Assembly: GCA_964199315.1 (NCBI GenBank)
Contig: OZ116699.1
Coordinates: forward strand, 33,108,001-33,172,000
Length of the DNA: 64,000 bases
Direction: 5' to 3'
Origin: Orbicella franksi
Taxonomy: Eukaryota
Made by a program: the position numbers and the translations under genes. Every line of letters starts with the position of its first letter. Position 1 is the stretch's first letter. Below, piece by piece: positions 42,930-45,900 of this stretch. A model generated the notes under the pieces. The model saw only the letters and a program-made list of their open reading frames with translations, had not been told where the DNA came from and searched no databases.

Positions 42930-45900
42930 CTATAGCTCCTGATGAGGCATGGTCCAATCAATCTCGTGTTTCTCGTTGATGTTGAGTGACAGACCAGTGA
43001 TTTTCAAGACCTATGAAAAAAAGATATAAGATGACGGAAAGACTACAACCCGGCTACCAGTTTGCAACATTTACCTTACTGGTACACTGAGTGGAGAAAT
43101 AAGAACAAAGATGAGGATAATGAAGGATTCGTTGATAAAGGAGTGCATGCCTCATTTCAGGCATTTTTAGAAACAGTTGACCTTGTCTTGTACAATTTCT
43201 CATAAAGTGCGACTACAATTCAAACCTTCTAAAACGAATATTTTTGAAATGGTACTAATTTATGTATTATTTATGTGTAAGATAATGACTGGTCCCTAGA
43301 GGAGGGGCGCGGGGCATACATTCGAGGCAACACAAAACCAACGAGTTTCTCGAAGGACTAGACATCACGCGTTTTGCTATCAGAAACGATAAATACGAGT
43401 CAGTGTTCATGCAAAACAAAGTACACTGTACCCAGCGTGTGAGTTGTAATCACTGAATGAAATGCAAAGTATTCGTTTCAGTTTGGTCATTCTCTCTTAA
43501 CCTCGAAACAACAAATCTGAGTCAACCTTAGCAGATACACTGAAACTCCAGCTACATAACAAAATTAGTTACCAGATACCTTGATGCTTTTGTCATAGGT
43601 AGCTTTATCTTGCATATCGTGTCCATCGACACTCAGTGATTTGATATCGTCTGCATCAAGTCCGTACACTGTTACCGAGCCCCATTTAGGAAGGCCTGCA
43701 GCTGAGTAACCATTCTTCTCGACGGTACATTTCAGCCCAGACTAAGAGAAAACAAAGCAACGTTAAAAAAGATTTTGGCACATCGATAGCGCATCGAGTA
43801 TGTATTTTCTTTCCTTTTTTGGCATTTAGCCAAGCTAGCCGCCTCTTGGAGGGGGCGGCTGTACACAGGCTACAGTAAATTAAATGTTATCGATAGTGAT
43901 TACAACTCGTTGTCACCACTTTCAAAATTGGCAGCATTTTCATCTTTATAATACACTGCGCCAAGTGGCAAAGTCACGCCATTTTTTTCAGAATAATTAA
44001 GTTTAGCTATCAATGTCTAGTGTGTATCCGAACCTCTGTTTCTTATTTACGTTTCAAAAAAAGAGCCCCAGTTTTTATGAGCGAATTGCCAACAAGATGC
44101 AGTCAAGCTGATAATCGCTCGTAGAAAACGAGGGAGACCTTTCTAATAGCTTCAGTGGACAGAAAAAGGGGAAACCTACAATTTTAGGTATTAAGCCAAA
44201 CCAAAAAATAATTTTGCGTGTTTTATCAGGGAATAAACAACCATCACAGAACCAATCACATTCGCGGATTTTTCAAAGAACTTACTGGCTGGCTTTTTAT
44301 AATTCTGAAAGTTCTAATAATAATCTAAGATTCTTGCCTACCTTGAAACCTGAAAACTTTATCAGCAGGTATTTGTTATTTTTTACGGTGTCTAAAATAA
44401 AAAAGCAGTAGTGTTAACCACCCACATTCTGATGGCATCCCGAATAGCATTTCTCTATGAAAATCTTATGAGTTTTTTTCAATAACACGAATATACAAGA
44501 GACCATGAGTAAAATATATATATATCAGTTAATTACAGACCAATGGATTCTCCGTCATCCCAAAAAAGCTGTCCTGTAGCTTCTCCTTCATCTCCCAGTG
44601 CTACAATCAGACCCATGGGCTTCTTACGACTGCAACAACAGCAATTGTATCATCATATGATAAAAATATTTACGAGATAATGAGGTCTGTGTTGTGTTGC
44701 AGTCAGTTCAAAGAGCATCGTTTCCACAAACTGGTAACTCCGGCTTGGCGAACGTATCGCCAGGTTGTTATACCATTTTATTGTAACGTTATTGAGTAAA
44801 CGTATCTTTTGCGAATCAAACGTTTTTCTATACATTGCGCAGTTCTATTTCATATGTATAAATAGATGTACAGTTATAGGTCTAATGTAAGTCAGATTGT
44901 TACCTGAAAGCAGTGTTGTTGGCAGTTTCCTGGGTTGGGATAATGTAACCGCCTCGTACATGAAGAGGAATGTGATCAAGAGGGGCGTCTAAAGTCACGT
45001 GACCCTCACGAGTGCTCATCGCTTTACCCTAAAAACAGACTGCTGTAAGTTGACAGGTATCGTTCCAAATAAGGCGCTCGCATGCATTACTACTGTTTGC
45101 TGATAGAAGATGCAAATGAAGCGCTTTCGAATACACATACAGTTTGAAAATGCACAACAAAATAGAGCACAGAACTATCCCTTATTCTTGCAGCTCTCAA
45201 ATTAGATTGTAAGAGCTTTGCAACCACGATACTGGAACACAATGCAACTGAGATGTTACGTGCGTACCGTGTAATAATCAAACCAACGATCATCTGGGAA
45301 GTATGCATCAACAGTCGTCTTGTTCTACAAGATATCAAGGAGTAAATATATACCAGTGGTCAAAAACATTTGTTTAGCATTTAAAAGCAAAATAAATAGG
45401 TCATTTTCGAGTTTTTTTTTTGTATCTGTATCAAAACCAGTCTTGGAGAGAAACCCATTCAGCTGAAAGGTGTTTCACTTTTCGAGCAAATCAAACCAAT
45501 TTTCATTTGAATGGTTTTGTTTTGCAAAAGACTTGTTTTGAAAGAGAGGCAATATACAACTCGGAAATGGCCTGTTTGTACAGATCGTAAGTTTATCCCA
45601 GCAATACGGATTTTTGTCAGAACATGTAGCAATAAAGTTTGTTTCTATATTACGACGAGTTAAAGAAAGACTGGGAATTTCAATGAAGCGGAGTCTGGCA
45701 TGGGGTAAATTCGGAATTCAGTAGTAATTAGCTATGCACTGTGTTTGTTACGTAGCGAAAGCTTTAGTTACTGACTGAATGTTTCGTTTCCCTTAAAAAA
45801 CAACCAGAGTATATCTTATCTCTTTATGTTAGGAAGTTAACTCAAATCTCTTTTGGATAACAAATTAATTAAGTTTTTACCTCTTCTAAGACCGGTGAAA

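Follow-up and report, generated by a model that had tools for sequence, protein, structure and literature searches.

An HQEL-ending tail in place of the membrane anchor in one of two tail-to-tail GH31 genes of the coral Orbicella franksi

The two GH31 genes of the locus

Two genes for glycoside hydrolase family 31 (GH31) enzymes, here called copy 1 and copy 2, lie tail to tail in a stretch of 64,000 nucleotides (nt) of the Orbicella franksi genome (assembly GCA_964199315.1, contig OZ116699.1, positions 33,108,001 to 33,172,000; hereafter the window). An initial annotation, made from the letters of the window alone, had pointed to the C-terminal HQEL of copy 2 as a possible retrieval signal of the endoplasmic reticulum (ER) that copy 1 lacks. 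The analysis showed that the tail of copy 2 is a real, expressed and conserved extension which replaces a membrane anchor. Whether it also keeps the protein in the ER or the early secretory pathway, as a signal of the H-x-E-L type would, is a question on which we regard the chances as evenly balanced.

Both gene models were built by hand from the paired alignment of the two copies and from the splice consensus. The millipede protein P0070 served as a guide only, and searches with proteins from single exons gave mostly fragments. An alignment of P0070 with 20 exon translations by MAFFT scattered these fragments and was dropped; a five-row alignment was used instead. The features of the two genes are as follows.

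42515 to 55021, minus strand: the complete GH31 copy 2 gene; 24 exons (GT-AG throughout), 898 amino acids, coding from 55001 to 42930
54998 to 55021, minus strand: upstream ATG and upstream open reading frame (uORF) of copy 2, from the alignment of both first exons
54849 to 55001, minus strand: exon 1 of copy 2, with the start codon at 55001; predicted signal sequence, then a trefoil (P-type) domain
55001 to 54951, minus strand: predicted signal sequence of copy 2, 17 residues, from hydropathy and the gene model
49466 to 49601: assembly gap (run of N) within copy 2 intron 9, preceding the acceptor of exon 10 by 5 nt
43580 to 43741, minus strand: exon 23 of copy 2; contributes to the distal C-terminal beta-sandwich; joints 43741/44342 and 43010/43580
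43011 to 43579, minus strand: intron 23, the last of copy 2; GT..AG, from RNA joints and the gene model
42930 to 43010, minus strand: exon 24, the last of copy 2; 19 residues, then TMPHQEL and TAG, from translation and RNA joints in four runs
42515 to 42929, minus strand: 3' untranslated region (3'UTR) of copy 2, about 415 nt, from RNA depth bins 42500-42899 and an X5 contig at 42515-42788
28346 to 40931, plus strand: GH31 copy 1 as a whole; 24 exons, 935 amino acids, tail to tail with copy 2
40773 to 40931, plus strand: last exon of copy 1; begins with the 19 residues shared with copy 2 and adds a tail of 33 residues with a hydrophobic end resembling a glycosylphosphatidylinositol (GPI) or transmembrane (TM) anchor

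The product of the copy 2 gene in the NCBI annotation of Orbicella faveolata is likewise 898 amino acids long, so the start codon chosen here does not reflect an assembly slip of the window. Pfam assigned PF00088 (trefoil), PF13802 (Gal_mutarotase-like N domain), PF01055 (GH31 catalytic domain) and PF21365 (C-terminal beta-sandwich) to this product, which is the architecture of the MGAM/SI type, and the best non-coral blastp matches of the copy 2 gene were MGAM/SI-like proteins with 45-50% identity. In the whole genome, only copy 1 and copy 2 carry a C-terminal domain of this type. The catalytic motifs are kept in copy 2, with the nucleophile in GLWIDKNEP and the acid/base in GHWLGDN, while the Met next to the nucleophile is changed to Lys (WIDKNE vs WIDMNE in copy 1). 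Two further differences lie at exons 9 and 10: the donor of copy 2 exon 9 is 12 nt further downstream than that of copy 1 (50093-50104, minus strand) and adds GYAK, and exon 10 (49413-49460, minus strand) is five codons shorter, with VSAKFENV where copy 1 has VWPTFENV. Copy 2 is an expressed soluble alpha-glucosidase of the MGAM type and is probably catalytically competent.

The initial annotation had also expected an N-terminal signal on copy 2, and inspection and hydropathy agree on a hydrophobic signal sequence there. It has an 11-residue hydrophobic core, T and A at positions -3 and -1, and ERV after the predicted cleavage site, and it is homologous to that of copy 1. A Kyte-Doolittle scan found hydrophobic windows of copy 2 confined to residues 1-18, whereas copy 1 has one at the N-terminus and one at the C-terminus. 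The mature copy 2 protein is accordingly predicted to be soluble and of the luminal type, with neither a TM nor a GPI segment.

At the 5' end of copy 2, the ATG homologous to the start of copy 1 is out of frame after a 1-nt deletion. It opens a seven-codon uORF (MASFHKK and stop) whose TGA overlaps the main ATG as ATGA. This uORF may reduce or regulate the translation of copy 2.

The terminal exon and its transcription

The HQEL codons occupy 42944-42933 and are followed directly by the TAG stop at 42932-42930, on the minus strand. Upstream, the acceptor of exon 24 reads ttttttcatAG, i.e., a polypyrimidine tract and then AG. By blastn, the DNA similarity between the two last exons stops at the final base of a Trp codon (42954 in copy 2, 40829 in copy 1). 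Past this shared Trp, copy 2 reads TMPHQEL and stops, while copy 1 continues for 33 residues with a hydrophobic end. Three statements of the initial annotation are thereby upheld, namely that the last exon ends in HQEL (by translation and RNA joints), that the copies are homologous up to the Trp and then diverge into a different 7-residue tail, and that the motif matches the ER-targeting pattern and is missing from the paralog (by both translations). The pattern is PROSITE PS00014, [KRHQSA]-[DENQ]-E-L at the extreme C-terminus. Given the amino-acid composition of copy 2, a random C-terminal tetrapeptide would fit it with a chance of about 2.4e-4. A single match is therefore unusual, yet some chance matches are expected across a whole-genome scan.

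To assess transcription, raw reads of two poly(A) RNA runs and the contigs of two RNA sets were mapped onto positions 39900-45899 of the window. The last-intron joint of copy 2 at 43008/43578 (cut +2, 43010/43580) was found in all four: X24 had 12 reads at nine starts, X22 a single read, and X1 and X5 one contig apiece. The four preceding introns also matched RNA joints exactly, so that the last five are confirmed. RNA depth past the stop reached approximately 42515, and a polyadenylation signal AATAAA lies at 42526. No joint from exon 23 or 24 of copy 2 to other downstream sequence was seen in the four runs, and the last exon proposed initially is thus the only one observed. For copy 1, the last intron was likewise confirmed in X24 (joint 40160/40771, cut +2), where RNA depth was similar for the two copies.

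These data bear on whether the HQEL exon is the true end of the protein or a mis-called exon, a minor isoform or part of a pseudogene. Such an error could be suspected in a hand-built model with an assembly gap in intron 9 and a start behind a uORF. On the other side stand the five matching introns, the 3'UTR covered up to AATAAA with no competing joint, the frame that is open over 24 exons, the 898-residue product in O. faveolata, and a spliced RNA contig of a second coral with the same end. A mis-called terminal exon is practically excluded, and we consider this whole explanation highly improbable.

One opposite-strand joint, 39996/44355, was rejected as a rearrangement and is read as copy 1 exon 22 reads placed on the homologous exon of copy 2, since exon 22 of copy 1 lies outside the mapped stretch. 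Between the two genes, a repeat at 41900-42500 had RNA contig depths in the thousands (maximum 8921, in X1) with many loose ends. This dispersed element is strongly expressed and belongs to neither 3'UTR.

Origin of copy 2 and loss of the anchor

Blastp gave 98.5% identity between copy 1 and a maltase-glucoamylase-like protein of O. faveolata (P0159), and 85% for copy 2. The corresponding O. faveolata locus in GCA_002042975.1 (L001) has 97-98% DNA identity to the window and contains the same pair of GH31 genes. The full-length protein of copy 2 itself was absent from the protein search results; its orthologs were found through a C-terminal piece of P0159. In the maximum-likelihood tree, copy 2 and Orbicella copy 1 are sisters (99/95) nested among the robust corals; Pocillopora branches off earlier, and the branch of copy 2 is about twice as long as that of copy 1. 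In Porites, a single GH31 gene lies within 10 kb at this locus, and copy 2 was not traced beyond the robust corals. Together, tree and locus indicate that copy 2 arose in robust corals by a tail-to-tail tandem duplication, which postdates the divergence of Pocillopora and predates the split between Orbicella and the second lineage described below.

After the homologous Trp, a hydrophobic C-terminal tail is found in copy 1 and in nine other retrieved single-domain MGAM-like proteins of cnidarians and amphioxus. These come from Pocillopora, Porites, Montipora, Acropora, Actinia, Nematostella and Branchiostoma (two amphioxus proteins). The membrane-anchoring tail typical of these proteins is missing from copy 2. 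None of the 368 fetched GH31 proteins ends in xxEL. Since copy 1 and the cnidarian and amphioxus relatives all carry the hydrophobic tail, the anchor is the ancestral state and HQEL is derived, in a young paralog. Copy 2 thus lost the ancestral anchor after the duplication and now ends seven residues past the last beta-strand, in T-[M/L]-P-H-Q-E-L.

Conservation of the HQEL tail

The coding sequence of the last exon of copy 2 was identical at 81 of 81 nt in O. faveolata (L001), whereas the flanks differ, and it was also identical in two Orbicella-like metagenome contigs (L006 and L007). A more distant ortholog, P0371, was obtained from spliced contigs of JGI metatranscriptomes (L003 and L004) with genomic counterparts L005 and L009. 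It shares the private characters of copy 2, FSGFK and a one-codon deletion, and it ends in ...VLRITGLSLNVNEEHEIEWTLPHQEL, i.e., ...EIEWTLPHQEL, directly before the stop. This second lineage was seen in runs of four organism labels (E-H), apart from the Orbicella labels (A-D).

Over exons 22-24, the window and the second lineage were 92.5% identical, with a synonymous divergence (pS) of 0.13 and a non-synonymous divergence (pN) of 0.06. Their last introns were approximately 73% identical where alignable, and the alignment ends at the stop codon, directly behind which the 3'UTR is unalignable. In the final 21 coding nt there was one difference (Met/Leu), with the same stop position. With the synonymous rate as the neutral expectation, at most one change in 21 nt has a probability of 0.19-0.23; with the intron rate, this falls to 0.013. 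Looking for xxEL in orthologs, which the initial annotation had suggested, thus gave HQEL in both O. faveolata and the second lineage, with P between 0.013 and 0.23 for the latter depending on the rate.

A conserved tail could also have another role, such as oligomerisation, partner binding, a processing site or an mRNA element, and fit the ER pattern by coincidence. In line with this, the non-synonymous rate of the tail equals that of the adjacent domain, which indicates constraint at most and no particular purpose. However, the ER pattern is the only known motif that fits, the tail is not part of the fold, and only its extreme C-terminal position is special. We therefore consider another role very unlikely.

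HQEL as a candidate ER-retrieval signal

Liver carboxylesterases have tails of the H-x-E-L type (HIEL, HVEL or HTEL). In KDEL-type signals, His at position -4 is as effective as Lys, and position -3 tolerates all residues except Pro (Raykhel et al. 2007, PMC2140024). The KDEL-like motifs of carboxylesterases are recognised better than KDEL by KDELR2, for which HVEL is named a strong motif, and species with a single KDEL receptor favour His (PMC2140024). HDEL binds approximately 10-fold tighter than KDEL through stacking of its His on W120, and Asp at -3 bridges to R169, a position for which a carboxylate (Asp/Glu) has been argued (Gerondopoulos et al. 2021, PMC8248988).

If HQEL acts in the same way, copy 2 would enter the ER through its N-terminal signal sequence, and the free ...HQEL terminus would be captured in the acidic cis-Golgi by the coral KDEL receptor, as in the H-x-E-L class of the carboxylesterase type. 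COPI vesicles would then return the protein, so that it would accumulate in the ER or the early secretory pathway, possibly with partial retention, while copy 1 would reside on the cell surface. Retention is made more plausible by the fact that the tail replaces the anchor, extends past the fold, is transcribed, and has PHQEL and the stop kept in the second lineage. In the crystal structure of NtMGAM, the construct stops at the homologous ..EW+1, where the tail of copy 2 begins, and the tail should therefore form a free 7-residue extension outside the fold. It is also more plausible because the genome encodes a KDEL receptor, exons of which were recognised as PF00810 matches of 97.5 and 93.7 bits (G000:C6:15.443-15.450 Mb). 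These two matches (G000:C6:15443361-15450333) are separated by 6.5 kb and overlap on the model (positions 4-92 and 26-143); four TGA codons lie inside the second. They may represent two tandem receptor genes, or one gene with a decayed copy.

On the other hand, several observations weigh against retention. SNEL, SDEL and QEEL conform to PROSITE and retain poorly (PMC2140024), and HQEL is not named in the main text of that paper. With Gln at -3, copy 2 would lack the salt bridge to R169. Positions -5 and -6 modulate recognition, and copy 2 has Pro at -5; a tail of seven residues is also short for a large glycoprotein. A literature search across 8.4 million full texts gave no record of HQEL beside 'KDEL receptor' or 'endoplasmic reticulum'. 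The conservation of the tail, seen in two lineages (n=2), has weak statistics and is suggestive, not conclusive, and its pN of 0.061 is that of the adjacent domain. The signal sequence of copy 2 is predicted from inspection and hydropathy, and the start codon sits behind the overlapping uORF. Finally, contigs of a third coral (L010, positions 489-578, and L011, JGI Ga0126343) contain a last exon of the copy 1 type in which CAA has changed to TAA just before the hydrophobic segment. Their products end in KGTGY or KGTGH with no ER motif, and the old tail is still recognisable behind the stop, though decaying. This stop is an independent loss of the membrane anchor. It shows that a soluble secreted form can be viable in its own right, so that selection could have acted on losing the anchor and on nothing else.

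Copy 2 could accordingly be a soluble version of the surface enzyme that is secreted, or bound for the lysosome or symbiosome, with the anchor loss selected and HQEL incidental and poorly captured. Recurrent anchor loss fits this, as do the lack of an experimental record for HQEL in the literature, the poor retention by some PROSITE matches, the missing carboxylate of the relay model at -3, and a tail conservation that falls short of significance when judged by the synonymous rate (P about 0.2). Moreover, the soluble GH31 relatives P0070, P0166 and P0168 terminate right after the homologous strand. Yet an incidental tail would fit the ER pattern only with the low chance given above, PHQEL and the stop position persist at a synonymous divergence of 0.13 although the 3'UTR right behind them is scrambled, and no known determinant is stronger than His at -4, with -3 being permissive. 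We consider an incidental HQEL on a secreted enzyme a serious contender, at slightly less than an even chance.

Comparison with known enzymes

Retention of copy 2 would have its closest parallel in KDEL/HDEL-type signals, especially the H-x-E-L signals of carboxylesterases. These proteins, like copy 2, carry a free-carboxylate C-terminal tetrapeptide on a soluble, signal-bearing hydrolase and have paralogs that are sent elsewhere in the secretory pathway. Copy 2 differs from this class in having Gln at -3 together with His at -4 (a combination for which no experimental record was found), Pro at -5, a 7-residue tail beyond a beta-sandwich, and a cnidarian receptor.

As an enzyme, copy 2 resembles the N-terminal-unit type of MGAM and SI: a trefoil domain, an N-terminal beta-sandwich, the GH31 (beta/alpha)8 domain and two C-terminal beta-sandwiches, with approximately 45-50% identity. 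It also has the catalytic Asp motifs and, behind the 'GK' motif, an insert of the MGAM type. Unlike MGAM and SI, it has no membrane anchor, WIDKNE for WIDMNE, a replaced VWP motif and the HQEL C-terminus. In the lysosomal enzyme GAA, which relies on mannose-6-phosphate for its sorting, only one residue follows the homologous Trp (...FLVSWC). Copy 2 is similar to GAA in being a soluble trefoil-GH31 enzyme with a signal peptide, but it groups with MGAM-like proteins in the tree, and GAA is devoid of a C-terminal extension.

The alpha subunit of ER glucosidase II (GANAB) has no retrieval signal of its own and is retained through the HDEL of the beta subunit, PRKCSH. To our knowledge, glucosidase II is the only known GH31 activity in the ER, and it needs this partner subunit for retention. 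If retained, copy 2 would share with it the property of being a GH31 alpha-glucosidase in the ER lumen. In contrast to GANAB, it belongs to another GH31 subfamily, has a trefoil domain and carries its own candidate signal. Membership of copy 2 in the GANAB/GANC branch was ruled out, as all near relatives are MGAM/SI/GAA-like proteins with a trefoil domain.

In the coral genome, the last MRH-domain exon of a glucosidase II beta homolog (L021:1516-1650; G000:C14:22990818-22990952, plus strand; ..EPSRCEYLMEFKTPAAC..) ends in ...LPHEHGGEL and a stop, not in HDEL. No exon with K/HDEL was found within 1.5 kb downstream, and a non-canonical xxEL could be the signal of coral glucosidase II. A second MRH-domain match ends in ...HRTEL and a stop, where it probably reads into an intron (GTAAG donor).

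Taken to its full extent, retention would mean that robust corals have taken a duplicated digestive alpha-glucosidase of the cell surface, exchanged its anchor for an H-x-E-L signal of its own and so made it a resident of the ER or the early secretory pathway, with an altered pocket that suits a luminal substrate (glucosylated N-glycans or another glucoconjugate). The ER would then contain, besides glucosidase II, another alpha-glucosidase that works independently of it. As a complete scenario we judge this unlikely. A literature search on the expression of coral maltase-glucoamylase gave nothing useful. Were HQEL to work, copy 2 would be a natural case of enzyme relocation by a change of the last exon alone, and HQEL, with Pro at -5, would join the working KDEL-receptor signals. 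The move of a surface or digestive GH31 enzyme into the ER, together with the altered substrate pocket, would suggest that reef-building corals have gained a new activity for processing glycans in the lumen. If HQEL fails, copy 2 is an ordinary duplicated enzyme that turned soluble, and matches of the PROSITE type need testing.

Neighbouring genes and repeats

Two large open reading frames for MFSD6-like proteins of the major-facilitator (MFS) type lie upstream of copy 1, at 11143-12888 and 23821-25620, both on the plus strand. They are annotated as MFS_1_like in O. faveolata, and the single GH31 gene of Porites also adjoins an MFS gene. The GH31/MFS neighbourhood is thus conserved, and the MFS gene may have been duplicated along with the GH31 gene.

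Relative to O. faveolata, the window has a 4.5-kb insertion at 17397-21940 (L001 joins 17396 to 21941). It contains two long minus-strand open reading frames of the retrotransposon gag-pol type, at 17671-19563 and 19567-21687, and looks like a polymorphic or species-specific retroelement. At the other end of the window, positions 61096-64000 on the minus strand are occupied by a long tandem array, of which the translation in one frame repeats ..FRKVFVISQGIPKLLLNILTY.., with open frames of 171-346 codons.

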